NCBI GenBank assembly: GCA_030390025.1
Contig: CM059430.1
Location: forward strand, 72,974,001 to 73,038,000
DNA: 64,000 nucleotides
From: Squalus acanthias
Lineage: Eukaryota
Direction of reading: 5' to 3'
Part shown: one piece after another, positions 16,464 to 60,072 of the stretch
Layout: each line of letters starts with the position of its first letter
Numbering within the stretch: the stretch's first letter is position 1
The notes under the pieces: generated by a model
Database searches by the model: none
Seen by the model: only the letters and a program-made list of their open reading frames with translations
Told to the model about the DNA's origin: nothing
Program-made: the position numbers and the translations under genes

Positions 16464-16565
16464 ACATCACAAGTCACAAAAGAAGGATTCGATAATTTTG
16501 TTTGCTGTGTCCTATAACTTTCAACCCGCGACGATAATCTGAATCAAGAAATCAATGTCTTACCT

Positions 16566-16678
16566 TTAAAACGGGACTGATTTCAAATTATCCACAATGA
16601 GTGTGGTCCCCACTAGAATTACTATTAAACCCAACATGAAACGGCACAGGTTGATGGTTTGGAATCGGTCAGGAGAGG
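16566..16678 (-). CDS. Gene A exon 4: transmembrane segment and short tail (exon extends to 16564)
   Basis: ttgctacccaccag| acceptor; phase-1 frame ASPDRFQTINLCRFMLGLIVILVGTTLIVDNLKSVPF*; AG|GTAAG donor; 115 nt and colinear with the gene B TM exon. Confidence 0.85.
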
Positions 16679-18559
16679 CTGGTGGGTAGCAACAGAAAGG
16701 AAATTTAAAGAAGTTTTGTCATAAATAGTAGAGAGAGGGACAGAGAGATGGAACTGTATATTCAGTCTGAATTGTTTCAGTTTATGAAGAAACAATCATT
16801 TTACTGCATTCTAAATGTTAGTACTGACTGTCTCCTCGTCCTATGAAATGGTCTGATTTTTTGGAGTCAGGGCTCTACTGGGGATTTAAAAAGTGGGTGT
16901 ACTGTACATCAGCTATCATATGTGTTTGCTGAAAGCATCTTGGAGCCATGCTTCCTGCGAAATCGTGTTTTTGATCTTTTAATTGGTGCATTTCCAGCCT
17001 TTAGAAGTTTACTTTATTTATTCACAAATATTTTCTGAAATGTACAGTACTACCAATAGGAGAATATACCCCACTGAGCTAGACAGAAAACTAATACAGA
17101 GTGAATCAAGAACTCCAAAATCAGAGTAAGTACTCAGTATATCATTGCTGTTCGTGGGACTGTTATGCACAATTTGTCTGCAAAACCATTTTATTGCCTG
17201 TGAATCTCTGCCGGACGTCCAGGGGATGTGTAAGGCATCCAGATTATTTCTTTGTGAATATATATTAGCAAAATAATGTTTGGTTCTTGAATCTGGGTTG
17301 AAGGTCATTCTTATTGCACCCAGTAAACGTTTGTTTAACCTGAAAGTAACTCTTGGTGGATTTATTTGTCAAATACCTCACGTACGGCAATTTTCCGTTT
17401 TCCACTCCTTTACCGCAGGTAGTAATACATTTATGTTAAAAATCATTTACAGAAAATCAGGGCTCCACCGCTGCAATAACTGACATGAACTCCCATTGGA
17501 AATTCTTTCTGCTGGGAGCATGTAATCACAATTTTGGAGCCCCGAATTTGCGTTCGGAGACGTACCTCCGGAGAAGATTGCGTACACCGTCATTGGCCCC
17601 GTAAAATGCGGTTTAATATTTTTACCTCAAGACACAAATTGAGCTGCCTGATCTGTCCTTGTTAACTGATTCAATGTATGACACAGGTAGCAGTTCAGAG
17701 ATTGTACCGCGCGGATGTCGGTTCTATTAAACATTTACTTTGAAACTCCCCTTGCAGAATTTCCGGCCCATTCCTTCCTAACGTGTTGATTACCTCATGA
17801 ATCTCAACATCAAGCTTTGCAGCCTCCCTTCGAATAATCTTTTAAAGGGACTCTGGAAGTCCTAATTCCCATTGAGTAGCTGTTGCAAAAGAGGTTATCG
17901 ATCCCCTAAGGAAGAGCCCCATACAACTGTAAGCAGCCTATTTGGTTCTGTTTTCACAATTATCGATTTTTACTCCACCCATCCACCGGAAATCAGGCCG
18001 AGTTCGGGGTGGTGGAAAGTTAAAATGCCGCGGGGGACTTTTACTCATTTTCTGCGCTGATTTGGCCGATTGCAGTGTTAAATTGTCCCGCTTTAAACAT
18101 GCTGACATCGGCGCCCGCTCTGCCATTCTCAACTGGGGCCTGACGGGAATTGTGGTCCTTTCCCGTCAGCCACGCCTGCCTGAAAAAATAGCCAGGTCCA
18201 AAACGTTAATTTTTGTCTTTTTTTTCTGTTTCCTTTTTGGCCAGGGCAGTAGTCCTCTGGGTCTCATAGGAAACCTTGGAACCCCCTAACCCTGGGCTTT
18301 GGCCCTCTCTCCCGATGGTGACTCTGCTCCCGGAGACTTTCCATACCGCCGCCGATCATTTCCGCGGGATCTGGCTTCCGCCTGCCGGCCAGGCAGTGAG
18401 TCTCGCCGAATTCTGGCGGGTGCCCAATCCTTAATATGGATATGAGGCCTGTGAGGTACAATCTTACCAGATATCGTCGTTGTCTTGCGAACTCTTCACT
18501 GGCCCCAACCCCGCATAAGTTCATATGGCGGCATCTACTTTCCCTGAATTATAATTGTC

Positions 18560-18745
18560 TGCGGGCAATTTTTACTTTGGGCAATGTTATAAAATGAGGG
18601 GTATTGAATTTCCTGCCCGTTTCACTTCAGACTGATTTTTCTTTCCATTGAAGTGAATGGAATGCAAAATCGGGCGAGCTATATAATGTGCGGCCAAATC
18701 GATATCACCCGTTTACCAGCATTTACCAAATGTAGGAATACGCCG
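18560..18745. mobile_element. Degenerate short fold-back MITE
   Basis: Central ccattgaagtgaatgg hairpin and imperfect arms resembling 54336-54521. Confidence 0.5.
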
Positions 18746-19069
18746 ACTGGCTGTTGGTTTTAGTTATGCTTTACGGGTGGTTACTCTGTCCTGTAATTAA
18801 CTGTTTGTTTACTCAACCGCGAGATCATATTTCGATAATTCCTGTCTGACAGGAACTTTCTCCTCGTCCCTTTTCCTTAATGTCGGTCCTGTTGACTGTC
18901 ACACTTTTCTTGCTTTCTGTTGCAGTAACGTTTTCCATCTATGGGGTGAACAGCGTGATTAGCTGGTTCTGAAGCTCAGCATTTCCCTGCTACAGTGACT
19001 GAACTACTTAATGTGTGATCTGGATGGGCCATATCCTGAATGTCAGACACATCCAATAGACAATTGCGC

Positions 19070-19161
19070 AGTGTGTGTATGTATATATATATATATCTCG
19101 AGGTAGAGAGAGATTTATGAGTATATCTGTGTGAGTCTGGTATGTACATCTGTATGTAGAT

Positions 19162-19198
<37 letters not shown>

Positions 19199-19220
19199 TG
19201 TCTGTCTGTATGTGTGTGTT
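19070..19220. repeat. (TG)n/(TA)n microsatellite region
   Basis: Direct inspection. Confidence 0.9.
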
Positions 19221-19344
19221 TGATGGCCTGGGCTAACTTCTCTCCTGCCCTATCTCTCAAACTCCCAACTCCACTGACTAAACGATCATGATACTAATCG
19301 CCAAGATCTCACTCTGTTTAATATCACTTCCTTCAATTCGCTCT

Positions 19345-19780: not shown

Positions 19781-20024
19781 ATTACCCAATCCAAGTCATC
19801 TTATTTCGCTCTTGGTTTCAAATCATATTTGAATACAATTTAAAATTGCGCTAATAGATATATCTTGCAACCCCAGATAATTATTTTGGAACAACGCTGC
19901 GCGAATATACCTGCTTACAATCTTCTCCACTGTTTCGCTAAATAAAGAAAGGTGAAAAATATTAATATCTGAATATTAACCTATCGGAACATCTTTTATC
20001 CTTTCCCCGTACTGTATTAGAGCA

Positions 20025-21180: not shown

Positions 21181-21189
21181 TTGAGTACG

Positions 21190-24195: not shown

Positions 24196-24385
24196 TTAAA
24201 TGTCATCATACAGATGCAAGTGTAAGCCAATGTATTAGCAGAACTGTGTTGCATAAAATCTGACGGGCCAAACATTTGCTAAACAGAATATTGTTCAAGT
24301 AGCTGTGTAAGATCATCTCTATTACACACAGGAATCACGTTTTCAAATGGCTAATGTAAACGGACAATTCATAAATTAATCTTAC

Positions 24386-24691
24386 CCAAATTATAGAAAG
24401 TGTAGCTGACATTGGCTGGAGTCTGGAGAGAGACATGAGACACTTGACAGGTGTAAACCGTCCCGCTCTCCACAGGCTCTGCATCATTCAGGTAGCTAGA
24501 AGCCTCATACAGTCCCGTTGGGTTCGGCCGTTTGATTGGTTCCATCCCGGACCCAATTACTGCTCCATTTTTGTACCAAGTGATTTTCAGATCATCCGGG
24601 AAAAATGCATTCGTTTTACAAACGAGAGTCAGGGGAACCACTGATCCACTCTCATACCGTATGGGGATCAGTTGGAGAGGAGTCGGAGCGT
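24386..24691 (-). CDS. Gene A exon 3: Ig C1-set domain
   Basis: ttatttttccag| acceptor and G|GTAAG donor, 306 nt, phase 1/1; DAPTPLQL...LTLVCKTNAFFPDDLKITWYKNG...YTCQVSHVSLQTP has the C1 hallmarks (C, FxP, W, YxCxVxH). Confidence 0.95.
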
Positions 24692-25812
24692 CTGGAAAAA
24701 TAAAGCAAGCGTTTGTTTTTAGGTCGTGACTTTAAAGCAAATGCCATTGCTGTAAGTCCCACTAAAGACATCCTAAAACCACAATGGCCCTTCAGCCTGA
24801 CATTGGAACCAATATGTTATATGTGCATTAAAAGCGCTTTACCAGTGTTACATGACAGACATTGAGCAATACAAATTAGCGCGTGGTACAGGATTCATAA
24901 GAATAGGAACCAGGAAAAATTTCCCACGGCATAGGTTAGATTTTTCTGAAACTTCTAAGGACAGCAACTTGCATTCGTGTAGCGCCTTTAACATCCCAGC
25001 AGCGGGATGAAAGAAAATTATAATATTCCCTCTGCATCGGCTAACTTCCTTCTGTTTTATCTGCGAAATAAATGAATTACGGTTTAACGCATCTAGTAGA
25101 GCAAAAGCCGGTTGATACCACGTCCAGTTTTCCTTTTCATTCACGTCGATGGAAAAGCAAATCGAGCATGTAAGTAAACAGCAGCGGATGCCCCCGTCCT
25201 CAGCTTTGCGCTACCGCCCAAGTCTATTTTAGCAGTTGTGTTTGTAATGGCTGGTTAAATAAATATTGACAAATAATTAGCATTGTCTGAATAAAAATGT
25301 GTTTACTACTGTTATAATTCTACCTTTTAATTCTTTTTTTTAGTGGTTAGTATATTATTGTGGGGCTCTCAGCCAGTTGGCTAGATTGTCTCCGCACTCG
25401 CATTTCGAGTGTATCTTGTGCTGTAGGTGTTCCGCAGTGAGTTCCGTTTGGAGTTTTCCCGTTTGTCCGCTTTAAATTCGGCGGAAGAGCCTCGGAAAAC
25501 CCGAGAATAAAACAAATTGTTACCTGTAACAGTTTTTCATGGAGAACTCTCATATAATTGGTTCCTCTCGATATTCTATTACAGAATCCCAGTTCTGGAA
25601 CTAATGCAATTTGTTCGCAATGTGGCAGAGAGCAGGGATTATATTAATTCATTTTCCAGATAGAAACTGGACATTTGTCAACCTGTGACGTGGGGTTAGA
25701 TTCTGAGCACATCAGCAGTTTTAGGGCGATATGATTTACATTATATTGAATGTAACTGGGAAGATGTATAATTGTACTGGAGTGGAACTTTCGGTTCTGT
25801 TTACTTCTATTG

Positions 25813-25820
25813 CCTGTCTG

Positions 25821-25879
<59 letters not shown>

Positions 25880-25889
25880 GTCTATCTAT
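25813..25889. repeat. (TCTA)n tetranucleotide microsatellite in the gene A V-C intron
   Basis: Direct inspection. Confidence 0.95.
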
Positions 25890-25959
25890 GGTCATCCAAT
25901 TATCTATCATTATTTCAGTTGTATAAACGACATCTAGATTTGTATGACACGCCACTTAC

Positions 25960-26280
25960 CATATACAAGTAGTTCTATGCCGCATCCGTCAACAAACCCG
26001 AATCTCCTCCAATTAAATCTGCAGCGATAGACGCCAGAGTCATTGACACTCACATTCTGAAGATGCAGATAAAATGTTCCATTTTGTAAAATATGCGATT
26101 CGGTGCGATTGTCGGAGGTTATTGCTACAGTTGAATTGGAACCTTCCTTCCTCCAATAAACAGTTAAATTCTCGTTCGTCATAAAGCCAGTTAATTTTCC
26201 TCGTAAGGTAACATTCCCGCCTCTGTTCACCGCAACAGAATTAGGGAAGTGAGTGATAGTCGGAGGAACATCTTGGGAAG
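25960..26280 (-). CDS. Gene A exon 2: Ig V-set domain with J-like G-strand
   Basis: gtattcccggcag| acceptor and G|GTAAGT donor, 321 nt, phase 1/1; GNVTLRG, VYWRK, LHLQNVSVNDSGVYRC, DGCGIELLV. Confidence 0.93.
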
Positions 26281-26463
26281 CTGCCGGGAATACATAGTGT
26301 AGCAGAATATTTACTTTGAAAACAATAGGTCGCGAATTCTTAAATAGCAGAGAAAAGCACAATATGGTAATATAAATGAAACAATTAAATAACAATGGTT
26401 GTATGTTTGTCGATAATTCTCTACTCCTGAACCGGACCTAGTTCTATTAAATCGCTCAAATAC

Positions 26464-26530
26464 CTGTGCAGAAAATCCCCAGCGTGGCACAATACAGAAA
26501 TACGATATTCCGAACCAGAACTAAACCCAT
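26464..26530 (-). CDS. Gene A exon 1: signal peptide
   Basis: ATG at 26530, MGLVLVRNIVFLYCATLGIFCT, CAG|GTATT phase-1 donor; 183-nt intron to the V exon. Confidence 0.85.
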
Positions 26531-26989
26531 AACTGAGTTGAGCTTTGCAGATGCTCCGATCAAACAACTGTTACAGTGACGTGTATGGTTGTAACACATT
26601 TAAACGGTATGCCAGTCCGCGGAGGATGTGGGCTGTGCCGAATGTCTGCCCCGTTCTCAACGCGCAGTGTTTCAGTTCGCTGTTACACTCCTGCAACTCA
26701 CTCTCAGGAACTTTACAAAGCATTGACTTTTTGAACACAGGAAAAGATATAAGCAGCTTTATAAAACTAGTCTATCAATATTCTGGGAAAAACAACTCAG
26801 GTCGCAATAGTTCCTTTCTGCTAAGAATGCAGCAATATAAAAGGACATCCCGGAAAGGAAGGTCGGAAAGCAAATTAGAAAAGACAGCGGCGAGCTGCCA
26901 GCGGGAGGTAAAGGAACTTGCAATGGAACTAGTTACCGAAAGTACCGAGCAAGTGAAAAGTTTCCAGGAACTTTTCAAGGCATAGGGCA

Positions 26990-31109: not shown

Positions 31110-32065
31110 GTATTATTTTTTATTCGATTTTTTGGGATGTGGGAGTCGCTGGCAAGGCCAGCATTTATTGCCCATCCCTAGTTGCAACGGAGAAGGTGGT
31201 GGTGAGCCGCCTTCTTGAACTGCTGCAGTCCGTGTGGTGAAGGTACTCCCACATGGCTGTTAGGTAGGGAGTTCCAGGATTTGACCCAGCGACGATGAAG
31301 AATCGGCGATATACATCTATGTCAGGATGGTGTGTGACTTGGAGGGGAACTTGGAGGTGGTGATGATCACATGCGTCTGCTGCCCTTGTTCTTCTAGGTG
31401 GAAGGGATTGCGGGTTTGGGAGGTGCTGCCGAAGAAGCCTTGGCGAGTTGCTGATGTGCATCTTGCAGATGCTACACACTGCAGCCACGGTACACCGGTG
31501 GTGGAGGGAGTGAATGTTTAAGGTGGTGGACGGGGTGCCAATCAAACGGGTTGCTTTGTCCTGGATGGTGTCGAGCTTCTTGAGTGATGTTGGAGCTGCA
31601 CTCATCCAGGCAAGTGGAGAGTATTCCATCACATCCCTTACTTGTGCCTTGTAGATAGTGGAAAGGCTTTGGGGAGTCAAGAGATGAGACACTCGCCGCA
31701 AAATACCTACCCTCTGACCTGGTCTTGATGCCACAGTATTTATGTGGCTGGTCCAGTTAGATTTCTGGTCAATGATGACGCCCAAGATGTTGAGGGTGGG
31801 GGATTCGGCGATGGTCATGCCGTTGAATATCAAGGGAGATGGTTAGACCCTCGCTTGTTGGAGATCGTCATTGCCTGGCACTTCTGTGGCACGAATGTTA
31901 CTTATCAGCCCAAGCCTGAACATCGTCCCGGTCTTGTTGCATGCGGGCATGGACTGCTTCATTATCTGAGGAATTTTGAATGGCGCTCAACAGTGCGCAG
32001 TCCTCAGCGAACATCCCCATTTCTGACCTTATGTTGGACCGAAGGTCATTGATGAAGCAGCTGAA
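31110..32065 (-). mobile_element. 5'-truncated LINE (CR1/L2 group, same family as 7668-8580) inserted in CR1
   Basis: ORF 31165-31833 IYKAQVRDVMEYSPLAWMSAAPTSLKKLDTIQDKA...SLHHRCTVAAVC. Confidence 0.85.
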
Positions 32066-34739: not shown

Positions 34740-37700
34740 ACCTTGACACCGACTAAATCCCCCTTAATTGCAACTGTCTGAGGCTGAACCAGACTGTTTG
34801 CAAACTTGGTGCCCTACGCGACCCCGAGATGAGCTTCCGACCACATATCCACGCCATCACTTAGACCGCCTATTTCCACCCCCATAACATCACACGACCA
34901 CTCCCCTGCCTCAGCGCATCTGCTGCTGAAACACGCATTTCTGCCTTTGTTACCTCCAGACTTTACTATTCCAAAGCAGTCCTGATGGCCGCCCACTTTC
35001 CACCCTCCATAAGCTTAAGTTCATGCAAAACTTGGCTGACTTATCCTAACACGCACCATGTCCCGTTCATCCATTAGCACTGTACTCGTTGGCCTACATT
35101 TGGCTACCATTAAAGCGAATTTAAAATATTAATACTTGTTTTCAAATCCCTCCATGGCCTCGCCCCTCCCAATCCCAGAAGGTATGGAGTAAAAGGTAAA
35201 GTGTTAAAAAAGGAAAAAGCAGGAACTAAGTGTCACAAAACATATTTGAAAGTTCTTTATCTGAATGCACGTAGCATTCGTAACAAAATGGACGAGTTAA
35301 CGGCACAAATTACTACGTATGGGTATGATCTTGTGGCCATTACAGAAATATGGCTGCAGGGTGACAACGACTGGGAATTAAATATGCCAGGGTATTTAAC
35401 AATCAGGAAGGACAGGCAGGAAGGAAGGGGAGGTGGGGTGGCTATGTTAATAAAGGAAGGAATCACTGTAATACTGATAAATGATATTGGGTCAAAGGAT
35501 CAGGATAATGAAACAGTTTGGATGGAGATAATGAAAATTAAGGGGAAAAAAACACTAGTGGGAGTTGTATATAGGCCTCCTAATAGTTGCAACTCTGTCG
35601 GAATAAGTATTAATCAGGAAATAGTTGGGGCATGTAATAAGTGAACAGCTATAATTATGGGGAATTTTAACTATCATATTAACTGGACAAATCAAATTGG
35701 GCAGGGCAGCCTTGAGGAAGAGTTTATTGAGTGTATTAGGGATGGATTGCTTGAGCAGTATGTAACTGATCCTGCAAGGGGGCAAGCAAACTTGGACCTG
35801 TTCCTGTGTAATGAGTCAGGATTAATTAATAATGTCCTGTTTAAGGCTACCCTTGGAATGAGTGACCATATTTGAATTCCATGTCCAATTAGAGGGTGAG
35901 AAGGTTGGTTCTCAAACAAGCGTACTGAGCTTGAATAAAGGAGACTGTGATGGTATGAGAGCGAAATTGATTAAAGTGGACTGGGAAAATTGATTAAAGG
36001 ATAAGTCGGTACATGAGCAGTGGTGTTCATTTAAGGAGTTATTTTACAACTTTCAAAAAATATATATTCTACTGAGGAAAAAAGGGTGTGAAAGAAATGA
36101 CAGCCATCCGTGGCTAAGTAAATAAATTAAGGATAGTATCCAACTAAAAACAAGGACATATAAGGTAGCCAAACTTAGTGGGAGGATAGAAGATTGGTAA
36201 GTCTTCAAAAGACAGCAAAAAGTAACTAAAGGATTGATTAAGAAAGGGAAGATAGATTATGAAAATAAATGAGCAAAAAGTATAAAAACAGATAGCAAGA
36301 GTATCTATAGTTATATAAAAAGAAAAAGGGTGGCTGAGGCAAACGTCGGTCCCTTAGAGCATGAGACCGGGAAATTAATGGTGGGAAACATGGAGATGGC
36401 AAAAATGCTGAACAAATATTTTGTTTCAGTCTTTACGGTAGAGGACACTAAGAATATCCCAACACTGGACAAACAGGGGACTCTAGGGGGGGGGGGGGGG
36501 TGGAGGAGCTAAATACGATTAAAATCACTAAGGAATTGGTACTCAGTAAAAAAATGGGACACAAGGCGGATAAATCCCCTGGACCTGATGGCTTACATCC
36601 TAGGGTCTTTAGGGAAGTGGCAGTAGGGATTGTGGATGCTTTGGTAATAATTTTCCAAAATTCCCTGGACTCAGCAAAGGTCCCGGCAGATTGGAAAAGT
36701 GCTAATGTAACACTCTTATTTAAAAAAGGTAGTAGGCAGAAGGCTGGAAATTATAGATCAGTTAGCCTAAAATCTGTGATGGGTAAAATTTTGGAGTCTA
36801 TTATTAAGGAGACAGTAACGGACCATTTAGATAAACATAATTTAATAAGACAAAGTCAGCTTGGCTTTATGAAGGGGAAGTCATGTCTGACAAATTTGCT
36901 TGAGTTCTTTGAGGACATAACGTACACGGTGGATAAAGGTGAACCAGTGGACGTAGTGTATTTAGACTTCCAGAAGGCATTCGACAAGGTGCCACATAAA
37001 AGATTATTGCTCAAGATAAAAAATCACTGGATTGTGGGTAATATTCTGGCATGGGTGGAGAATTGGTAATCTAACAGGAAGCAGAGAGTTGGGATAAATG
37101 GTTCATTCTCGGACTGGCAACCAGTAGCCAGTGGTGTTCCACAGGGGTCGGTGCTGGGTCCCCAAATCTTTACAATCTATATTAACGATTTGGAGGAGGG
37201 GACCGAGTGTAACATATCAAAGTTTGCAGATGATACAAAGATGGGAGGGAAAGTAGAAAGTGAGGAGGAGATAAAAAACCTACAGGGGGTATAGACAGTC
37301 TGGGTGAGTGGGCGGAGATTTGGCAGATGCAATACAATATTGGATAATGTGAGTTTATGCACTTTGGCAGGAAAAATTAGGGAGCAAGTTATTATCTTAA
37401 TGGCGAGAAACTGGAAAGTACTGCAGTACAAAGGGATCTGGGGGTCCTAGGGCAAGAAAATCAAAAAGTTAGTATACAGGTGCAGCAGGTGATCAAGAAG
37501 GCCAACGGAATATTGGCTTTTATTGCTAGGGGGATAGATTATAAAAACAGGGCGGTATTGCTGCAGTTATATAAGGTATTGGTGAGATCGCACCTGGAAT
37601 ACTGCATACAGTTTTGGTGTCCATACTTAAGAAAAGACATACTTGCTCTCGAGGCAGTACAAAGAATGTTCACTCGGTTAATCCCGGGCATGAGGGGGTG

Positions 37701-38610
37701 GACATATGAGGAGCAGTTGAGTAGATTGGGACTCTACTCATTGGAGTTCAGAAGAATGAAAGGCGATCTTATTGAAACGTATAAGATTGTGAAGGGGCTT
37801 GATCGGGTGGATGCGGTAAGGATGTTCCCAAGGATGGGTGAAACTAGAACTAGGGGGCATAATCTTAGAATAAGGGGCTGCTCTTTCAAAACTGAGATGA
37901 GGAGTAACTTCTTCACTCAGAGGGTAGTAGGTCTGTGGAATTTGCTACCCCAGGAAGCTGTGGAAGCTACATCATTAAATAAATTTAAAACAGAAATAGA
38001 CAGTTTCCTAGAAGTAAAGGGAATTAGGGGTTACGTTGAGCGGGCAGGAAATTGGACATGTGGCTGAGTTCGGATCGGTCAAGGCCCTGTGGGTGGCGGA
38101 GCGGGCCCAAGGGCTGAGTGGTCGGGTCCTGCTCCTACTTCTTGTGTTCTTTAGATTTGAGGTTAGGATCAGATCAGCCATGATCTTATTGGATGGCGGA
38201 GCAGGCTCGAGGGGCCGATTGGCCTACTCCTGCTCCTATTTCTTATGTCCTTATGTATCTCTGTAACCTCCTACAGCCCTAGAAAGGTCGGAGCTATCTG
38301 TGCTCCTTCAATGCTGACCTTATGCGCAACCCCAATTTTAATCGGTGCACCACAGGTGTCGATGCATTCAGCTAGCTGGGCACCAGACTCTGGAATTCCC
38401 TCGCTTAACCTCTGTGCCTCTATACCTCTCTTTCCTCCTTGAAAATGCTCCTTAAAACCTACCTCTTTGACCAAGTCTAATGGTCATCTGCCCTTATATC
38501 TCCTTCTGTGGCTCGGTGTCAAATTTTGTTCGATAATGCTCCTTTGAAATCCCTTGGGACATTTAACTACGTTAAAGACGCGCGTTATAAAAGCAAATTG
38601 CTTTTGTTCT
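34740..38610 (+). mobile_element. L2 3' portion split by the CR1 insertion at 35175-38255
   Basis: catggcctcgcccctccc (35155) and tatctctgtaacctcc (38256) rejoin to match the L2 copy at 16090-16125. Confidence 0.8.
35175..38255 (+). mobile_element. Near full-length CR1 ORF2 with long open stretches
   Basis: [53 protein letters not shown]; duplicated 3' tail. Confidence 0.95.
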
Positions 38611-38684: not shown

Positions 38685-41540
38685 AGAACATAAGAACATA
38701 AGAAATTGGAGCAGAAGTAGGCCATTCGGCCCTTCGAGCCTGCTCCGCTATTCAATGACATCATGGCTGATCTTCTACCTCAATTCCATTCACTGGCCTT
38801 ATTGCTATATCCCTTGATGCCCTTACTAGTGAGAAAACTATCGACTTCTGTTTTGAATATGCCCAATGAATGAGTCTCCACAGCCATCTGAGGTAGTGAA
38901 TTCCAAAGATTCACCACCCTCTGTGTGAAGAAATTTGTTCTCATCTCAGTCCTGAATGGCCTACCCTTTATCCTGGAGCTGTGGCCCCTGGGTCTAGACT
39001 CCTCAGCCAAGGAGCCCATCATACGACAGTCCCGCCATCCCAGGAATCAATCTCATGAACCTTCGGTGCACTCCCTCTATGACAAATATATCCTTCCTTA
39101 GGTAAGGAGACCAAAATGTAACACAGTACTCCAGGTTTGGTCTCACCAAGGCCCTATATAATTGGAGTAAGACTTCTTTACTCCTGTACTCAAATCCTCT
39201 TGTAACGAAGGCGAGCATACCATCTGCCTTTCAAATGGTTTGCTACACCTGCACATTCCCTTTCAGTGACTCATGTACAAGGGCACCCAAGACCCTTTGA
39301 GCATCTGCATTCCCCAATCTTTCACCATTTAGGAACTACTCTGCCTTTCTGTTTTTTCTACCAAAGTGGATAACATCACATTTATTCGCATTATATTCAA
39401 TCTGCCATGTTGTCGTCCACTCACTGAGCTTGTCATGATGCCCTTGAAGCCTCTTCACAACTGACATTGCCACCTAGCCTTGTATCATCTGCAAATTTGG
39501 AAATGTTACATTTAGTCCCCTCATCTAAATCATTGATAAAGATTGTGAATAGCTGGGGCCCAAGTACTGATCCTTGCGGTATCCCACTAGTCACAGCCTG
39601 CCATCCTGAAAAAGACCCGTTTATCCCTACTATTTGCTTTCTGTCTGTTAACCTATTCTCAATCCATGCTAGCATATTAACCCCAATTCTATGTGCCCTA
39701 ATTTTGTTCACCAACCTTTTGTGTGGGACCTTATCGAAGGCCTTCTGAAAATCCAAATACACCACATCAACCGGTTCCCCTTTGTTTACTCCACTAGTTA
39801 CATCCTCAAAGAACTCCAAGAGGTTTGTTAAACAGGGTTTCCCTTTCAAATATCCATGTTGACTCTGCCCAATCTTACTATTAGTTTCTAAGTGCCCAAT
39901 TATTGCATCCTTTATAATAGATTCCAGCATTTCCCCAACTACTGATGTGAGGCTGACAGGTCTATAGTTACCCGTTTTCTCTCTTCCCTCCTTTCTTAAA
40001 TAGTGGGGTTACCGTTCCAGAATCTATAGAATTTTGGAAGATGACAACCAATGCGTCCACTATCCCAATGGCCACCTCTTTCAAAACCCTAAGATTTAGG
40101 CCATCCGGTCCTTGGGATTTTTCACCTTTTAGTCCCATTAATTTTGCTAGTACTGTTTTTTATAAATAATAATTTCTTTAAGTTCCTCATTCTCGCTACA
40201 CCCTTGGTTTTCTCGTATTTCTGGGAAGTTTTTTGAGTTTTCCTCCGTGAAGACTGAAACACATTATTTATTTAATTTCTCAGCCACTTCCTCATTCCCC
40301 ATTATAAATTCTCCCGTCTCTGACTGTAAAGGACCTACATTTACCTTCACCAGTCTTTTCCTTTTCACATACCTATAGAAGCTTTTACAATCTGTTTTAA
40401 CATTTTTCGCTAGTTTGTGCTCATATTCCATTTTCCCTTTCTTTATCAATTTCTTGGTCCCCCTTTGCTGATTTCTAGAAAGATCCCAATCCTCAGGCTG
40501 ACCGCTTTTTCTGGCAACTTTATAAGCTTCCTCCTTTGACTTAATACTAGCTTTAATTTCTTTTGTTCGCCATGGTTGAGTCACTTTTCCTTTTGTTTTT
40601 TTTTACCCTAAAGTAATATATATTTGTTGCAAATTTTGCGTTATTTCCTTGAATGTTAGCCACTGCATTTACACCTCCATACCTTTAAGTGTAGTTTCCC
40701 AATCTACCATGGCCAACTTATCACTCCTACCCTTGTAGTTTCCTTTGTTTAGATTGAAGGCCTTAGTTTCAGATTGGACTACATCACTCTCAAACTTAAT
40801 GAAAATTCAATCATATTATGGTCACTTGTACCTAAAGGCCCCTTTACCACAAGATTATTGATTAGCCCTTTCTCCTTACACAGTACTAGATCCAGAATAG
40901 CCTGTTCCCTGGTTGGTTCCTCCACATACTGATCCAGGAAACCATCTCGCATGCATTCCAAGAATTCGTCCTCCACACCATTAGTGGTGATTTGATTTGC
41001 CCAGTCAATATGTAGTTTAAAGTCCCCCATGATTACCGTATTGCCCTTGATATAGGCACGTTTAATTTCTTGTTTGATTCTGTGCCCTACATTACCATTA
41101 CTGTTTGGTGGCCTATACACAACGCGCACCAATGTTTTCCACCCTTTGCTGTTTCTTAGCTCCACCCAAACTGATTCCAGTTCTACATCAGGATCTGCCG
41201 AGAAAAGATTTTTTATCTCTACCGTACCGATCTCATCCCTTATTAACAGTGCTACGCCACCACCTTTTCCTTTTTGTCTGTCCTTCCTAATTGTTGAGTA
41301 CCATGGAACATTCAGTTCCCTACTTTGGTTACCCTGCAAATTGTTTCTGTAACGGCAATTACTTCATATCCATTTACTTCTATTAGTGCCATTAATTCAT
41401 CCACCTTGTTGCGAATGCTACATGATTTAGATAAAGTGACTTCAACTTTGCCTGTTTAATATTTTTCTGCACTTTCACCTTCTTTACTTTAGGCCTTTGT
41501 TTCTGCGCCCTGCTAGTTTTGCTGACTACTTTTCTAACTT
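38685..41540 (-). mobile_element. Near full-length CR1 ORF2
   Basis: ORFs 40779-41339 (APE), 39433-39930 (RT) and 38780-39218; (AGAACATA)n tail at 38685. Confidence 0.95.
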
Positions 41541-44075: not shown

Positions 44076-44084
44076 AGAAATGTT

Positions 44085-45290: not shown

Positions 45291-45894
45291 AATTAAACTG
45301 AATTAAATTTGTAATTAGGTAACTTAGTTTACAGTGTAGTTTCTAGACTAATTACTTGATCTAGATTAAGTTATCGGTACTGAAATTAAATATCTAACTT
45401 CAACACAAAGTAATACAAGTAGTGTAGGCAAGAAACAATAACTCCTTTCCCATTTTCTCCGAATTCCCACTCTTTCCAGTTCCCAGATAAAATACTCATT
45501 TCAACTACACACCGTTTTAATCCAGCTCTGTACAGACCGCTCTATGCTTTGCGGACCTGTTTCCTCTCATATGCTAGGTGCCTCACTCAATTTACAAGCA
45601 TCTCACTGAAATATACACATGCGTTTTATTTCAATAGCTCTGCATAAGTTATACTTTTAGATTGGTTGAACGTTAATGAATAGTGCGGTGTTATAAATTA
45701 TGTATTGTAGACTTTGTACCCGTCCATTGGCGTGAAATCGGGGATACCTATTGAGCTCCACTGGAAATCAGAATTGTTAGCCATTTCTCTAGGGATTCTT
45801 TCCGTCGTTGGAGTCATTTCAACTTTTTGGACCGTATAAATTACGATAGCGGATCGGCCGCCTGTTGCATATCCTGCAGCATTTTCTTTTTAAT

Positions 45895-47267
45895 GACTTT
45901 AAGGAGTCCATTATTAAGGAAGCAGCAGCAGGACATTTAGAAAATCATAATACAGTCAAGCAGAGTCAGCATGATTTTATGAAAGGGAAATCATGTTTGA
46001 CAAATTTGCTGGAGTTCCTTGAGGATGTAACGAGCAGGGTGGACAAAGCTGAACCAGTAGATGTAGTGTATTTGGATTTCCAGAAGGCATTCGATAAGTT
46101 GTCACAGAAAAGGTTACTGCATAAGATAAGAGCTCATGGGGTTGGGGGTAATATATTAGAATGGACAGAAGATTGGTTAACTAACAGAAAACAGAGAGTC
46201 GGGCTAAATGGGTCATTTTCCATTTGGCAAACGGTAACTATTGGGGTGCCATAGGGATCAGTGCTGGATAATCAACTATTTACAATCTATATTAATGACT
46301 TAGATGAAGGGACCGAGTGTAATGCAACCAAATTTGCAGATGATACAAAGATAGTTGGGAAAGCAAGTTGTGAAGAGGAAACAAAGAATCTGCATAGGGA
46401 TATAGACAGGCTAAGTGAGTGGGCAAACATTTGGCAGATGGAGTATAATGTGGGAAAATGTGAGGTTATCCACTTTGGTAGGAAAAATAAAAAAAGCAAA
46501 TTATTATTTAAATTGATAGAGATTACAAAATGCTGCAATAGAGAGGCACCTGGGGTCCTTGTGCATGAAACACAAAAAGTTAACATGCAGTTACAGCAAG
46601 TAATCCAGAAGGGAAATGGAATGTTTGCCTTTATTGCAAGGGGGTTGGAGTAAAAAAGCAGGGTGGTCCTGCTACAACTGCAGAAGATATTGATCAGCCC
46701 ACACCTGGAGTACTGCGTACAGTTTTGGTCTCCTTATTTAATGAGAGATATACTTGCATTGGAGGCAGTTCAGAGAAGTTCCACAAGGTTGATTGCTGAG
46801 ATGAAGGGTTTGACTTATAAAGAAAGTTTGAGCAGGTTGGGCCTATGCTCATTGGAGTTTAGAAGAATGACAGGTGATCTTATTGAAGCATATAAGATAC
46901 TGAGGGGGTTCGACAAGGTAGATGCAGAGAAGATGCTTCCCCTTATTGTGGAATCTCGAACTTGGGGGCATAGTTTCAGAAGAATGGGTCGCCCATTTAA
47001 AACTGAGATGAGAATGAATTTCTTCTCTCAGTGGGTCGTAAATCTGTGGAATTATCTGCCCCAGAGAGCTGTGGAGGCTGGGGCATTGAATATATTTAAG
47101 GTGGAGGTAGATAGATTTTTGAACAATAAGGGAGTGAAAGGTTATGGGGAGCGTGCAGGGAAATGGAGCTGAGCTCAAGATCAGATCAGCCATGATCTCA
47201 TTAAATGGCAGAGCAGGCTCGAGGGCGTAAATGGCTTACTCCTGCTCCTATTTCTTATGTTCTTATG
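45895..47267 (+). mobile_element. 5'-truncated CR1 LINE
   Basis: [29 protein letters not shown]; tail tttcttatgttcttatg. Confidence 0.93.
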
Positions 47268-53430: not shown

Positions 53431-53433
53431 CAC

Positions 53434-54288: not shown

Positions 54289-54335
54289 ATAGTATCTGTT
54301 TCATCCACTTGAAGTCGGCCATACTTAAACCTACA

Positions 54336-54663: not shown

Positions 54664-54748
54664 TCAATATTCCACCGGAGCTCTCTCGCTGTCCTGCCAT
54701 ACGTGCCCTCCGGCTACAACGTTTTTCCTGGTCTCTTTACCTGGTCTC
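54664..54748 (-). CDS. Gene B candidate cytoplasmic exon
   Basis: ttttcccctttcatttgagcag| acceptor; phase 2 continues the TM exon as RRPGKETRKNVVAGGHVWQDSERAPVEY*. Confidence 0.5.
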
Positions 54749-56005: not shown

Positions 56006-56120
56006 CTGCAGAAGTTATCTGGTTTAATGTGGTTGAGGATGATCATCATTAGTAGAATAATTACCAATATCCCCACGCTGGATCGATAAATCAGGTGGAA
56101 TGGGAAGACAGCGTGATAAC
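56006..56120 (-). CDS. Gene B transmembrane exon
   Basis: ccttttccag| acceptor and CAG|GTAAG donor, 115 nt, phase 1/2; GYHAVFPFHLIYRSSVGILVIILLMMIILNHIKPDNFC. Confidence 0.88.
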
Positions 56121-57256: not shown

Positions 57257-57515
57257 ATTAGCATTATGGACACTTTCCTTTTGAAAACTGGCATTCTCCA
57301 GAAGTTGAATTGGAACAGCACTTCCTATATATCATTAGATAGATAGCCAGAACGGAAAAGGCATGTGTCCCATTACTGTAAATTGCGATAAAACGAAGTT
57401 TTAGAGATAAAATGATAATATGCAAATCAGCTGCTACAGTCGGTTAGGTGCAATAGAAAATAGATTTATGTGGGGGAAAAACAGAACGATACAAGTGCGA
57501 CGCGTGTTAAAATAT

Positions 57516-57812
57516 CATCTTTGTAGCTGGTGTAGATGACACTGGCTGGAATTAGCAGAGAAACATGCGACACTTCACAGGTATAAAGTACCCCGCTCTG
57601 GACAGGATGTGTCTCTTCTAAAGAGCTGGAAACTTCATACAGTCCCTCCTCATTTAAATGTTGTACCGTTCCAAATCCAGACATAAGTTCGAATACCATC
57701 TTTATGCCAAGTGAGTTTAAAGTCCTTCGGGTAAAATCCGGCCGTTCTGCACTGGAGGTTGAGAAAAGAAGGCGAAACTCCTTCAGATGCTTTGGGGAGA
57801 ATCGTCAGTGGA
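57516..57812 (-). pseudogene. Gene B Ig C1-set exon, disrupted; first ~10 nt and acceptor lie in the gap
   Basis: LNLQCRTAGFYPKDFKLTWHKDG, then one extra base near 57694, then FELMSG...YTCEVSHVSL; expected donor reads G|ATATT. Confidence 0.8.
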
Positions 57813-57949
57813 NNNNNNNNNNNNNNNNNNNNNNNNNNNNNNNNNNNNNNNNNNNNNNNNNNNNNNNNNNNNNNNNNNNNNNNNNNNNNNNNNNNNNNNN
57901 NNNNNNNNNNNNNNNNNNNNNNNNNNNNNNNNNNNNNNNNNNNNNNNNN
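57813..57949. other. Assembly gap
   Basis: Run of N. Confidence 1.
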
Positions 57950-58489
57950 AGGAAAATGTTTTGATTTAAATCTACCTAATGATTAATACAATAAAATAAG
58001 TCCTGTTATGATTTTAAAATTATAACTGACTTATCATTGACTAGGATGCAGCCATATCGATTGATTTCTTTATTATATTTTCGAAATTGTTTTTTCCGAT
58101 TTCCTCCTCTAACGCTACTAAATTATAACTTTATAAATATTCTCTGTTGTTAAATCTAGCAGAATGAATTTGACATAATTGTCCCATATATATTATTATT
58201 TCTACTTTTAGATCTGCGTGTTGTACTTGAAACTGTTTCAGTTATGCAGATTGTGTTCTGATATTAGGGACTTCAGGTACTCAGTTACAGCTCAGTCAAG
58301 ACGAAATGCTCTTGCTACTGAATAACAGGAACAGGAAGCAAAAGAAAAAAGTTTCTGATCAAAAATTAAAGTATTTTCTTAGCTAATCTCCTCTTTCCAT
58401 ACAGTAAATGGGATCCACTTTGAATACAATAATAAATTAATTAATGCATGTTTAAATAAATAAAGAAATACATAGTTGATGAATATGTT

Positions 58490-58784
58490 ACATATATATA
58501 TATATAGATAGATAGAAAGATAGATAGACCGATAGANNNNNNNNNNNNNNNNNNNNNNNNNNNNNNNNNNNNNNNNNNNNNNNNNNNNNNNNNNNNNNNN
58601 NNNNNNNNNNNNNNNNNNNNNNNNNNNNNNNNNNNNNNNNNNNNNNNNNNNNNNNNNNNNNNNNNNNNNNNNNNNNNNNNNNNNNNNNNNNNNNNNNNNN
58701 NNNNNNNNNNNNNNNNNNNNNNNNNNNNNNNNNNNNNNNNNNNNNNNNNNNNNNNNNNNNNNNNNNNNNNNNNNNNNNNNNNNN
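58490..58784. other. (TA)n/(TAGA)n microsatellite running into an assembly gap (58537-58784)
   Basis: Direct inspection. Confidence 0.95.
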
Positions 58785-59336
58785 AGATGCATGTGGAAGA
58801 ATAATTGTAAATAGGACTTGTCAAGTCAAACTAAAATTGATATGGAATGAATTACTTTGAAGTGCAATGACTGTTATATTAGCAAATACGAACTAGGTTA
58901 TGCATTTAATTCCTGGAATGGGAATAAAGCCAATCTTTAATTCCTGGAATTTCCTGATTGTATGTTATCATCATTGAACCTAAATTATGGCCCAGACCAT
59001 GAAGTGGGGAAAATAACAGATGCATATTTTATCTATGAAATCTGATGAAAAGTAAGCTCATTTCCTTAATTGATACGACCGTTAGAGTAGCAGAATTGGC
59101 CTTTCAATGAGGTCAAAGTAGTGAACCATTCATTGAAATGTAAGACGATTAACGTATAACGTGTTCTTAAGTCGCTATATAATGAGATGGCATTAACGAG
59201 ATTTACAATAACAAATGCATATAACATAGATACTTATTTCCGTGGAAACAACGTCTGTAACAACAATAAAATCATATTTTTGTTTTCCTTCTTAAATATC
59301 GTTTGAATATCGATGTAGATACAACTCGACCCATAC

Positions 59337-59648
59337 CAGATACAGCCAGTTGTGCACCAGTTGCGTTTCCTATAGATTTTTCCTGATATGTCACTGCACA
59401 GTAATACATTCCGGCGTCCAATATATTCACATTCAGAATGTGAAAGTTGCTAGAGCTTCTCTTTGTTTGGAACACTTTCCCACTGTCTGGTTGTAAGTAT
59501 CTGTTGTACCCGTGTCTCCACCAGGACACCATAATTTCTCCGAGCTCTTGATAAAGCGGGAAAGTGCAATAGAAAGAAACATTTGAACCAATGAGCGTGA
59601 TCTTTCGTTCATTGAGCTGAGTTACTTTGGCCGATGTTCCAAGAAACA
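59337..59648 (-). CDS. Gene B exon 2: end of signal peptide and Ig V-set domain with J-like G-strand
   Basis: ttttttgacag| acceptor and G|GTATG donor, 312 nt, phase 1/1; KVTQ, NVSFYC, VSWWR, ILNVNILDAGMYYCAV, GNATGAQLAVS. Confidence 0.95.
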
Positions 59649-60017
59649 CTGTCAAAAAAATAAAAAATAATTCGATTACATCGTTCATACATGGGATGTG
59701 TGGCATCTTCTGCCACAATAATACCATCCACCCAGCTAACCAATATATTATTGATTGCATGTACAGATCTGTCTGACTAGTTTAACGCATGCGAATGTGT
59801 TTCTTCGCTAAAGTAGCATGCTTAGTCCCACGTTTATCCCTTATTTTTTCTGATTTATACTGAGAAACACGTGCGATAAAAAAATACATAAACAGAGGAA
59901 ACAACTCAGGAACAGTAGCAATAGCTAAAAATGAACATTATAGCACATGTAAAGGTTTGCTTCATGTATTGTTTCCTGTTTCGCAAAGACGATATATAAC
60001 AAACAAGATTTTTTTAC

Positions 60018-60072
60018 CTGGAGAAAGAATGCCCAGGATGAACATGCGCCGCAGGACATCACCCACAACCAT
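60018..60072 (-). CDS. Gene B exon 1: signal peptide
   Basis: MVVGDVLRRMFILGILSP, CAG|GTAAA phase-1 donor; joins VFLGTSA/KVTQ; an in-frame upstream ATG exists at 60144. Confidence 0.8.

Follow-up and report, generated by a model that had tools for sequence, protein, structure and literature searches.

An open mosaic receptor gene and a P0105-like neighbour, disrupted as assembled, in a chondrichthyan family of germline-joined VJ-C1-TM proteins

Two described systems are compared here with the locus studied, the SIRP proteins and PRARP. SIRP molecules have two C1 domains after the V domain, and SIRP-beta carries a Lys in its transmembrane (TM) segment and pairs with DAP12. PRARP, a non-rearranging VJ-C1-TM-ITIM family of chicken and other bony vertebrates, was reportedly described by Fu and colleagues in 2019 as consisting of VJ, C1 (in non-avian species), TM and ITIM and as forming homo- or heterodimers. 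We examined a 64-kb stretch of Squalus acanthias DNA (the window, in its entirety) in which an initial annotation had placed two V(J)-C1-TM genes, referred to here as genes A and B. The best overall explanation, to which we assign a probability of roughly 0.6, is that gene A is an open mosaic receptor gene and gene B, as assembled, a P0105-like pseudogene, both members of a chondrichthyan family.

Membership of both genes in a large chondrichthyan multigene family of germline-joined VJ-C1-TM proteins is almost certain. Chondrichthyan (shark, ray or chimaera) names were found on 52 of the 56 matches in a profile search and one match was unnamed; the other three scored at most 94 bits, against at least 147 bits for the remainder. 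The gene A C1 domain drew 905 matches when 1.84 billion representatives were scanned with HMMER, with single-C1 proteins of about 200-420 aa at 40-67% identity to the query. Chondrichthyans made up 16 of the 20 named representatives, and the other four were multi-stretch matches at 24-34% identity. Alignments were colinear with the family, and the Pfam domain scores of gene A, together with the family matches to exons of both genes, exceed what would be expected of chance gene calls. The family protein is predicted to be a type I membrane receptor with a split leader, V(J), C1 and TM.

The initial annotation had called both genes germline-joined and assigned them to a little-characterised cartilaginous-fish family. 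Both points stand: kin were found only in these fishes, the names they bear are automatic and contradictory, and no description of this family was found in the literature searched. The further proposal, of innate receptors with a tie to a pre-RAG ancestor, is an inference. The V(J)-C1-TM layout agrees with the precursor of two domains, VJ + C1, that is depicted in the legend to Figure 2 of PMC12227049. The reported lack of a CACAGTG recombination signal was likewise confirmed, as the four copies in the window (at 4361, 6394, 12834 and 30387) all lie at least 4 kb from the V exons, and no heptamer-spacer-nonamer pattern was found on either strand.

The idea that PRARP has its cartilaginous-fish counterpart in this family seems improbable. 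The two reportedly share the same architecture, but a bony-vertebrate V-C1-TM protein was present in none of the 56 profile matches and none of the 20 named representatives, in a word-indexed search that can miss distant kin. We consider it just as doubtful that the family is cartilaginous-fish SIRP (SIRP-alpha, -beta), as NCBI names have it, and nothing new in kind. Many members are automatically named 'tyrosine-protein phosphatase non-receptor type substrate 1-like' or 'SIRP beta-1-like', the family profile runs uninterrupted across domains 1-2 of SIRP-alpha (2wng, E 8e-28) and has a match in SIRP-gamma as well, and the same paired design of ITIM tails versus a basic TM residue is seen. However, a single C1 exon separates V from TM in genes A and B, against two in SIRP, with no further C1 exon found in the 64-kb window, and their TM residue is Arg, unlike the Lys of SIRP-beta. 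With the same family profile, UrIg2 and lambda light chain outscore SIRP. Automatic names also vary across members (SIRP-alpha-like, tapasin-related-like, Ig lambda-like, NCR3LG1-like, CD276, TCR beta, MHC II and PD-L1), so the SIRP name is a nearest-hit label only. In addition, a 2026 survey dates the origin of the human SIRP family to Tetrapoda (PMC13262535).

Table 1. Exons of genes A and B and assembly gaps, in window coordinates.
Feature	Position	Strand	Description
Gene A leader exon	26464..26530	-	67 nt; ATG at 26530; 22 codons + 1 nt; phase 1; hydrophobic
Gene A V(J) exon	25960..26280	-	321 nt; phase 1/1; G-x-G..L.V into GT donor
Gene A C1 exon	24386..24691	-	306 nt; phase 1/1
Gene A TM exon	16564..16678	-	115 nt; phase 1 entry
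Gene B leader exon	60018..60072	-	55 nt; ATG at 60072; 18 codons + 1 nt
Gene B V exon	59337..59648	-	312 nt; phase 1/1; both canonical Cys
Gene B C1 exon remnant	57514..57812	-	two frames; donor lost
Gene B TM exon	56006..56120	-	115 nt; phase 1/2; open; Arg-type TM
Candidate gene B terminal (fifth) exon	54664..54748	-	putative; absent from the exon list of the initial annotation
Assembly gap	57813..57949		hides acceptor and about first 3 codons of gene B C1
Assembly gap	58537..58784		gene B V-C1 intron, beside (TCTA)n run; no coding sequence touched

Identical layout and phases had been claimed for the two genes (Table 1). This was borne out for all exons of gene A and for the leader, V and TM exons of gene B, but the gene B C1 exon is frameshifted, donor-less and clipped by a gap. 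All gene A acceptors are AG and all donors GT, including that of the leader at 26463-26462 (context gtatttg). The leader-V and V-C1 introns measure 183 and 1268 nt, and the exons splice to the 268 aa first reported (codon sum 22+1+106+1+101+1+36 = 268). A 115-nt TM exon of phase 1/2 had been described for both genes; the size is correct in each and the phase holds in gene B, where the exon is open, but gene A stops before its donor, at an in-frame TAA (16568-16566) 2 nt upstream of a kept GT donor (GTAAGA). Since the frame ends there, phase 1/2 in gene A is the relic of an unused junction, and the stop could represent a recent truncation. The J-like G-strand said to run into the donor of each V exon is kept in gene A (G-x-G..L.V); that of gene B is degraded and has Ala in place of the first Gly of G-x-G.

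Gene A is probably a coding gene. Its V domain scored 44.4 bits with Pfam V-set (cut-off 26) and 46 bits with Ig_3, and its C1 domain 46.1 bits with C1-set (cut-off 21). When only the window was searched with family proteins, matches reached E 3e-42 for C1 and about 3e-13 for V. C1 hallmarks given in PMC2785349, namely (F/Y)(F/Y/H)P, a Cys-to-Trp spacing of 13 residues, and xVxH, are present in both genes, with FFP and C-Q-V-S-H as the gene A residues. An AlphaFold model of the V domain had a pLDDT of 82.4, and its best Foldseek matches were shark VNAR, lambda V, PD-L1 V and TCR V (TMq 0.73-0.81).

The V and C1 domains of gene A differ in their relation to the family, as assessed in trees from quick searches with SH-aLRT support only. 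C1 is 68% identical to that of P0165 (Heterodontus) and 66% identical to that of P0006 (Heptranchias), and forms a clade with P0006, P0165, P0025, P0011, P0166 and P0022 (SH-aLRT 94; clade not starred). The V domain shows just 28-31% identity to those of the same C1-clade proteins, which are 40-76% identical to one another. The gene A end branch is the longest of the V tree (1.36, median 0.32), whereas that of C1 is ordinary (0.30, median 0.25). The V domain also has seven N-glycan sequons; across the family (n = 40), the median is 2 and the highest count 4. All four C1-clade members with a recognisable TM have an uncharged one, and tyrosine-motif tails are present in this subfamily wherever the tail is modelled; in gene A, an Arg is placed close to the outer end of the hydrophobic segment and the tail has 8 residues. 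Judged by its sequence, gene A is a mosaic that joins an ordinary C1 to a very fast-evolving V, a TM of the Arg type and a short tail.

Some of these features might also be read as signs that gene A is dead or dying, whether as an unprocessed pseudogene or as a relic that does not signal, with a drifted V and a tail cut by a nonsense mutation before the old donor. Gly at exon residue 27 replaces the B-strand Cys, the sole case in 41 aligned rows, and both the missing V disulphide and the longest V branch are expected under loss of function. The TAA just ahead of the retained donor and the broken neighbouring gene would fit as well. No transcript evidence was found: none of the RNA runs listed contained the stretch, and in three small runs of RNA reads the only coverage within it was one 33-nt intronic repeat. 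We nevertheless regard loss of function as rather unlikely. Each of its four exons reads open between canonical splice sites, and C1 is conserved as in bona fide members. Neutral decay would be expected to strike the V and C1 exons equally, so their uneven divergence argues against plain neutral decay. In the same 41-row alignment, V keeps the core residues W42, D80, Y84 and C86 and, in the G-strand, G98, G100, L103 and V105; the confidence of its structural model also speaks for an intact fold. Furthermore, Scyliorhinus has a modelled short-tailed protein with an Arg-type TM (P0043, 259 aa).

Two TM designs were recognised in the family. In the first, an uncharged 'GCAGGGL'-type TM is followed by a tail of 100-150 residues with repeated ITIM-like motifs; in the second, to which genes A and B belong, the TM bears an Arg close to the outer end and the tail is short or medium. 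A hydrophobic segment was present in 45 of 55 proteins chosen by regular expression, and 20 of these 45 had at least two ITIM-like tail motifs. Members with an Arg-type TM were P0026, P0043/P0151/P0153 and P0105/P0164. The gene A TM resembles that of P0043 only at the level of pattern (11/30 identical, E 4.4).

As a coding gene, gene A could specify a cell-surface protein that dimerises through its C1 domain. The TM Arg might recruit an ITAM adaptor whose TM contains an acidic residue, of the FcR-gamma, CD3-zeta or DAP12 type, and the protein would be the activating counterpart to ITIM-bearing relatives in the same cluster, perhaps with altered ligand specificity. An adaptor-coupled, activating function is offered tentatively. 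P0105 combines an Arg-type TM with a tail that ends in the ITIM-like V-G-Y-D-A-L, and an Arg-type TM is therefore no guarantee of an activating role.

Gene B, as assembled, is a pseudogene or is misassembled beside a gap. Its order, strand and spacing fit the gene A layout, with a V-C1 intron of about 1.5 kb including estimated N. The V domain scored 24 bits with V-set, under the cut-off of 26. The first readable C1 base, 57812, corresponds approximately to residue 4 of the gene A C1. Relative to gene A, a 1-nt insertion near 57695 splits the domain over two frames, and DNA alignment revealed a 3-nt deletion and a change of the GGTAAG donor to AGATGAT. The C1 halves cover complementary positions of the C1-set profile (2-38 and 51-86) and score 19.2 and 18.9 bits, each under the cut-off. 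In window-only searches with family proteins, matches reached E 2e-24 for V and 4e-22 for the C1 pieces.

A true pseudogene is somewhat favoured over an assembly error. If gene B were intact in the animal, the frameshift, absent donor and absent acceptor would all be assembly errors by the gap; the lesions are indeed restricted to the single exon abutting 57813-57949, and V, TM and the candidate terminal exon read open and have good splice sites. This is unlikely, though it keeps some weight, since there are two independent lesions (the insertion; the deletion with donor loss) and these lie 116-300 nt from the gap in non-repetitive sequence. The degraded J-like strand also argues against it, as does the candidate tail, which stops just past the Tyr where P0105 has its ITIM-like motif. 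The candidate terminal exon is preceded by a polypyrimidine tract and CAG acceptor; its first G completes AG/G (Arg), and 27 codons lead to TGA. It resembles the P0105/P0164 tail only weakly (E 0.16 and 0.065), yet has the right strand, order and phase.

The description of genes A and B as a tandem pair did not hold in the sense of recent duplicates. The two paralogues are old and come from separate subfamilies, with identities of 18% for V and 44-48% for C1; BLASTP gave no alignment between their TM segments, and no similarity was found between their introns. On sequence grounds, gene B belongs to an old, P0105-like subfamily. The first half of its C1 groups with P0105/P0114/P0124 (SH-aLRT 97), its V is 43% identical to P0169 (E 2e-24), and its TM shows 65% identity over 34 residues to that of P0105 from Chiloscyllium, with E between 1e-6 and 1e-9 when only the window was searched.

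Direct reading and a script check confirmed the exons of gene A, the lower-numbered of two neighbouring minus-strand receptor genes that consist of a leader, a V(J) domain, a C1 domain and a transmembrane segment (TM). Each of its acceptors is an AG that follows a pyrimidine tract, all donors begin with GT (gtatttg, gtaagt, gtaaga and gtaaga), and the three junctions are in phase 1. Whole and split codons sum to 22+1+106+1+101+1+36 = 268 in an open frame, exactly the 268-residue product and exon set described in the initial annotation. The TAA stop precedes the TM exon's donor by 2 nt, which leaves that exon's phase 2 exit unused.

Exons of genes A and B, with positions in the window
Feature	Position	Strand	Remarks
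Gene A leader exon	26530-26464	-	67 nt; direct reading and script check
Gene A V exon	26280-25960	-	321 nt; direct reading and script check
Gene A C1 exon	24691-24386	-	306 nt; direct reading and script check
Gene A TM exon	16678-16564	-	115 nt; direct reading and script check
Gene B leader exon	60072-60018	-	as first described
Gene B V exon	59648-59337	-	as first described
Gene B TM exon	56120-56006	-	115 nt; entered in phase 1, left in phase 2; stop-free
Candidate fifth exon of gene B	54748-54664	-	pyrimidine tract, CAG acceptor, 27 codons to TGA

The domain class of both genes was assessed with Pfam models and by residue hallmarks. The C1 exon of gene A scored 46.1 bits on C1-set (cut-off 21). 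Its V exon scored 44.4 bits against the V-set cut-off of 26, and 46 bits on Ig_3. The two readable C1 pieces of gene B reached 19.2 and 18.9 bits on C1-set, each alone under 21, and its V exon reached 24 bits on V-set, under the cut-off of 26. Hatherley et al. name as C1 hallmarks the motif (F/Y)(F/Y/H)P at the BC loop, 13 residues from Cys-B to Trp-C, and xVxH after Cys-F (PMC2785349). All three were found in gene A (FFP, 13 residues, C-Q-V-S-H) and likewise in gene B (FYP, 13 residues, C-E-V-S-H). The J-like strand keeps G98, G100, L103 and V105 in gene A; in gene B the first Gly is replaced by Ala, and the germline-joined V(J) feature is thus partly present. Gene A lacks the canonical B-F disulphide, having Gly where 40 of 41 rows of the family alignment have Cys, with 59 residues between its two V cysteine positions. 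Gene B has both cysteines. No heptamer-spacer-nonamer pattern occurs anywhere in the window, and no CACAGTG heptamer of a recombination signal sequence (RSS) lies within 4 kb of either V exon. The claim that V and J-like parts share one exon without an RSS therefore holds, both by exon reading and by the distance of more than 4 kb to the nearest CACAGTG.

All searches used single exons or natural database proteins as queries. When the C1 exon of gene A was compared with the PDB by HMMER, UrIg2 (9dmx) was the best match (E 5.6e-18), and IgM constant domains, light chains, SIRP-gamma and SIRP-alpha were also among the leading matches. With the V exon of gene A, Robo I-set domains scored equal to antibody V domains. 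Because this result was ambiguous, the V exon was folded with the 41-row family alignment. When the resulting model (pLDDT 82.4) was compared with the PDB by Foldseek, the matches were V domains of shark VNAR, lambda (TMq 0.81), PD-L1 and TCR. The ESM Atlas cluster nearest to this V domain was a V-set 'putative antigen receptor' (0.96), which serves as a lead. The same exon had no match in a 5.8-billion-protein index at a reach of 58-185-aa proteins, a range outside which full-length kin fall.

When 1.84 billion representative proteins were scanned in full by HMMER with the C1 exon of gene A, 905 matched, of which 150 were listed. The top listed matches were of two kinds: very long proteins that matched in 6-13 C1 stretches with an identity of about 30%, and proteins of roughly 200-420 aa with a single stretch near residues 120-225 at 40-67% identity. 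Names were looked up for 20 of the 150. All single-stretch proteins among these (14/14) were chondrichthyan, as was a two-stretch Callorhinchus gene model (P0002; P numbers denote stored database proteins matched in the searches), and the genera represented were Heptranchias, Callorhinchus, Scyliorhinus, Stegostoma, Chiloscyllium, Mobula, Heterodontus and Narcine. The four non-chondrichthyan proteins (pig, lungfish and two teleosts) had three stretches and 24-34% identity. With the natural protein P0006 from Heptranchias as query, 15 matches were obtained, every one chondrichthyan. A profile of 19 family proteins returned 56, of which 52 had chondrichthyan names and one was unnamed, in word-indexed searches by which distant bony-vertebrate kin could be missed; below 147 bits the next profile scores are 94 (for a caecilian tapasin-related protein), 60 and 45. 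The named family matches represent 15 species, the chimaera Callorhinchus included.

Exon by exon (leader, V(J), C1 and TM), both genes are colinear with this family in alignment, although for the TM exon of gene A alone the similarity is not significant. Near-invariant positions in the 41-row alignment are the B- and F-strand Cys, a Trp, D-x-G/A-x-Y-x-C and G-x-G-(S/T)-x-L-x-V. The last of these (first Gly in 38/41 rows; second Gly, Leu and Val in 40/41 each) is the J-like strand, which directly abuts the donor of the V exon.

Public protein sets already contain the family under names that mislead, and non-rearranging VJ-C1 receptors are known as a kind. Automatic names given to its members include SIRP-alpha-like, SIRP-beta-1-like, tapasin-related-like, Ig lambda-1-like, NCR3LG1-like, CD276, TCR-beta-like, MHC class II-like and PD-L1-like, a clash typical of an uncurated family whose labels are wrong nearest-hit names. 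Examples are XP_067853506 of Heptranchias perlo ('SIRP-alpha-like'), P0165 of Heterodontus francisci ('Ig lambda-1 light chain-like'), XP_038662025 of Scyliorhinus canicula and XP_072403667 of Chiloscyllium punctatum. No report on the family was found in the full texts searched; its genes may be listed in the supplementary gene tables of PMC12227049 and PMC10751288.

Two further kinds of gene model were seen in these searches. The two multi-C1 proteins checked, from a shark (P0001, Carcharodon, 1105 aa, 'titin-like') and a ray (P0003, Hemitrygon, 1014 aa, 'uncharacterized'), had the highest total scores for the C1 exon of gene A, with 6-13 C1 stretches, and are probably UrIg2-like or other VJ plus many-C1 genes under wrong automatic names. 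The Callorhinchus model P0002 (382 aa) has the order C1 - V - C1, an apparent merger of neighbouring family genes that suggests tight tandem arrays in the elephant shark.

We compared the family with known receptor systems, using its profile against the PDB. The best match was UrIg2 (E 9.9e-36, three C domains summed), followed by the lambda light chain in 2rcj (1.2e-33), SIRP-alpha domains 1-2 (2wng; 8e-28, in one stretch across V and C1), SIRP-gamma (1e-24) and many light chains that matched end to end at about 1e-23. No TCR, B7-H6 or tapasin chain appeared by name among the 60 listed PDB matches, and B7/butyrophilin was rejected as the identity of the family because none was present in that same set. 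Ig light chains and TCR share the V-J-C1 layout, in TCR with a TM as well, and the V model of gene A superposes on lambda V (TMq 0.81) and TCR V. In contrast to these, genes A and B have no V/J split, RSS, D or J segments, and a rearranging antigen receptor was rejected on the lack of separate V and J segments and of an RSS. The V domain of gene A also differs from Ig and TCR in the short distance of 59 residues between its cysteine positions, and its best structural matches include the short VNAR-type V.

Among non-rearranging receptors, PRARP is reportedly a VJ-C1-TM protein with ITIM that forms dimers in bony vertebrates (Fu et al. 2019). By that description its VJ-C1-TM-ITIM layout is that of the family, which is chondrichthyan, whereas PRARP was described from bony vertebrates. 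NITR was rejected because its members are not known to have a C1 domain. SIRP resembles the family both in a V domain with a J-like strand followed by C1-set domains and in the occurrence of inhibitory ITIM forms beside short-tailed forms that bear a basic TM residue. That residue is Lys in SIRP and Arg in the family. By architecture the family is not SIRP, having a single C1 instead of two: SIRPs are V-C1-C1, whereas genes A and B have one C1 exon between V and TM, and tblastn detected no second C1 exon in the window. Kinship of SIRP with the antigen-receptor precursor has been proposed (PMC2785349), and a 2026 survey puts the origin of the SIRP family at Tetrapoda (PMC13262535). A lungfish 'SIRP-alpha-like' protein (P0064) was considered as a test of SIRP kinship and rejected, as it is a model of three C1 domains for which hhalign shows C1 homology only (probability 97).

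UrIg and UrIg2 occur in the same animals and share with the family a single-exon VJ, a split leader, C1 domains and the absence of rearrangement. UrIg2 has 9-11 C domains (PMC12227049) whereas the family has one C1, and the UrIg genes, described in that paper as individually named, differ from a multigene family with ITIM or Arg-TM signalling designs. Per-domain scores to UrIg2 were modest (27-53 bits). UrIg/UrIg2 was therefore rejected as the identity of the family on its single C1 exon versus many C domains, four or more being the criterion.

TM and tail designs were surveyed in 55 proteins, picked by regular expression from 208 stored ones (P0006 and P0165 were among those left out). A hydrophobic segment was present in 45 of the 55, and in most of the 45 it was an uncharged 'GCAGGGL...'-type TM. 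Tails with at least two ITIM-like motifs ([SIVLT]xYxx[ILV]) were found in 20/45. In a second type of TM an Arg lies close to the outer end and the inner end reads '...IIVDH'. This type was seen in P0026, in one Scyliorhinus gene (P0043/P0151/P0153) and in one Chiloscyllium gene (P0105/P0164), and in P0048 it lacks the Arg. Over 34 residues the TM exon of gene B has 65% identity to P0105 (E 1e-9, window-only search). Comparison of the gene A TM with P0043 gave 11/30 identities at E 4.4, and BLASTP gave no alignment between the TMs of genes A and B. Homology of the gene A TM exon to the Arg type was accordingly set aside, and the likeness is kept as a common pattern, 115-nt size and phase. Because P0105 joins an Arg-type TM to a tail ending in an ITIM-like motif, the rule that Arg means activating is unsafe for the whole type. 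The candidate tail of gene B ends right after the Tyr that matches that of the P0105 motif.

The TM of gene A bears an Arg at its outer end and is followed by a tail of 8 residues; the gene thus has the basic TM residue and short ITIM-less tail of an activating member of a paired-receptor system. In a C1 tree (45 rows, columns of the full-length alignment, quick search, SH-aLRT only) it fell with P0006 (Heptranchias), P0165 (Heterodontus), P0025 (Callorhinchus), P0011 (Chiloscyllium), P0166 (Mobula) and P0022 (Amblyraja), a subfamily of sharks, rays and a chimaera (support 94). The TM is uncharged in all four clade members in which one is recognisable (P0006, P0165, P0166 and P0022), and the three long tails modelled within the clade (P0006, P0165 and P0166) all carry tyrosine motifs. 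Gene A therefore joins the C1 of an uncharged-TM subfamily to an Arg-type TM. Its C1 is 55-68% identical to the clade proteins (66-68% for P0006 and P0165), which are 50-68% identical among themselves, and its C1 end branch is 0.30 versus a median of 0.25. Its V is 28-31% identical to the clade proteins, versus 40-76% among themselves, and its end branch is the longest in the V tree (1.36 versus a median of 0.32), where its placement is unsupported. Gene A is the sole row of the 41 with Gly for the B-strand Cys, and its V carries seven N-glycan sequons, where the family has a median of 2 and at most 4 (n=40). As two exons of one gene have diverged unevenly, contrary to neutral decay, a live gene is favoured, though not proven: from these sequence comparisons, its binding domain appears to have changed fast after the gain of an Arg-type TM and a short tail. 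Gene A would then be a natural example of domain-specific acceleration, with V fast, C1 held, and TM and tail switched.

No RNA run was listed as containing this stretch. Three small public RNA runs with the same species label were compared with 24300-26600. Only 24961-24994 was covered, with no splice joint. This 33-nt piece of the V-C1 intron of gene A lies in very abundant short contigs of the three runs (word depth up to about 2250) and is probably part of a high-copy repeat. A tblastn search downstream of gene A gave nothing significant for cytoplasmic exons; the one match, at 13964-13929 (minus strand), 2.6 kb downstream of the stop, was to the end of the candidate tail exon of gene B and was rejected as support for 'fossil' cytoplasmic exons, since its E value of 0.54 is non-significant. 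Two cysteines of gene A were noted, one directly before the TM Arg (16641-16646, minus strand) and one in the G-x-G position of the G strand of the V domain (25979-25981, minus strand). In uncharged-TM members a Cys is conserved where the TM begins ('GCAGGGL'). Either cysteine of gene A could form an interchain bond.

Paired immune receptors such as KIR, LILR, SIRP and NKp46/NKp30 with FcR-gamma/CD3-zeta combine inhibitory ITIM forms with adaptor-coupled activating forms. By analogy, long-tailed family members may inhibit through phosphatases recruited to their ITIMs, and Arg-TM members may assemble with an ITAM adaptor that has an acidic TM and then activate. A dimer is likely, since according to PMC2785349 a C1-set domain is always found in cis pairing with another domain.

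Discussion of antigen-receptor origins centres on UrIg, UrIg2, NKp30, SIRP and PRARP, and germline-joined VJ plus C1 plus TM is the exact architecture invoked for the gene into which the RAG transposon inserted. A two-domain VJ plus C1 gene has been postulated as the first stage of the antigen-receptor lineage (PMC12227049, Fig. 2 legend), and the family has the form of that stage, as a resemblance only. A stronger proposal is that the family is the surviving form of this two-domain (VJ and one C1) precursor, working as Arg-TM germline dimers. Arg-TM chains such as gene A would pair via C1 with a second chain of the cluster, and the germline-encoded, TCR-like dimers would signal through acidic-TM ITAM adaptors. 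The hyper-diverged, glycan-covered and disulphide-less V of gene A would be that of a specialised, surrogate-like partner chain and not a decaying domain. We regard this proposal as improbable; if true, a pre-RAG style of receptor would still be in use. Of the original suggestion that these are innate VJ-C1-TM receptors like the pre-RAG ancestor, the germline-joined VJ-C1-TM form, the uncurated chondrichthyan family and the precursor-like architecture stand, and function, expression, linkage and ancestry are inferred.

The result at the level of the genes is modest, with one odd but open family member and one copy that is probably dead. The family carries greater weight: at least 52 database proteins represent it in 15 chondrichthyan species, with both ITIM-type and Arg-TM-type designs, and the interest lies mostly in it and in the domain-specific acceleration of gene A, less in the gene A/B pair. 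Naming and mapping the family and placing it in V and C1 trees would clean up shark genome annotation, show whether inhibitory/activating pairs of VJ-C1 receptors arose before cartilaginous and bony fish diverged, and give a new comparator for models of antigen-receptor origin.

Gene B was first described as an intact twin of gene A. This description was not borne out, as its C1 is clipped by a gap, frameshifted and without its donor. The window holds two N runs, 57813-57949 and 58537-58784. The first swallows the C1 acceptor and about the first three codons, and because the exon border falls within this gap, neither continuity nor frame can be followed through it. The readable part runs in one frame through F-Y-P-K-D-F-K-L-T-W-H-K-D-G and then in another through Y-T-C-E-V-S-H; its halves match the first and last thirds of Pfam C1-set (positions 2-38 and 51-86). 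DNA alignment with gene A placed one extra base near 57695 and a 3-nt deletion at the end, and gene B reads AGATGAT at the position of the GGTAAG donor of gene A. The order, strand and spacing of its exons are compatible with one gene, and this copy is probably dead. The stretch 54748-54664 is, from its sequence, a plausible fifth exon: its first G completes an Arg codon (AG plus G), and it matches the tail of P0105 weakly (E 0.16 and 0.065, window-only search).

The two genes are 18% identical in V and 44-48% in C1, and their DNA matches only in 117 nt of C1 coding sequence (75%) and in a (GATA)n run. In the C1 tree the first C1 half of gene B clusters with P0105, P0114 and P0124 (SH-aLRT 97), and several family members share 40-49% identity with its V. 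The genes lie about 28 kb apart, with fragments of LINE endonuclease and reverse transcriptase (RT) between them, and tblastn with all exons of both found no further paralogous exon in the window. By these comparisons, genes A and B are old paralogues from different subfamilies and no recent tandem pair.

The V-C1 intron of both genes contains a (GATA)n/(TCTA)n microsatellite, at 25806-25893 in gene A and 58489-58536 in gene B. The second N run lies in this intron of gene B beside the (TCTA)n run and has no coding consequence; as the microsatellite abuts it, the gap is probably the unassembled remainder of the repeat. The LINE-type retroelement fragments between the genes lie at 31165-31833 (minus strand), 35201-38067 (plus), 39433-41339 (minus) and 45865-47172 (plus). 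A Pfam search gave no match for the open reading frame at 31165-31833; in the other fragments it placed RVT_1 at 36500-37069 and 39433-39930 and Exo_endo_phos_2 at 40779-41339.
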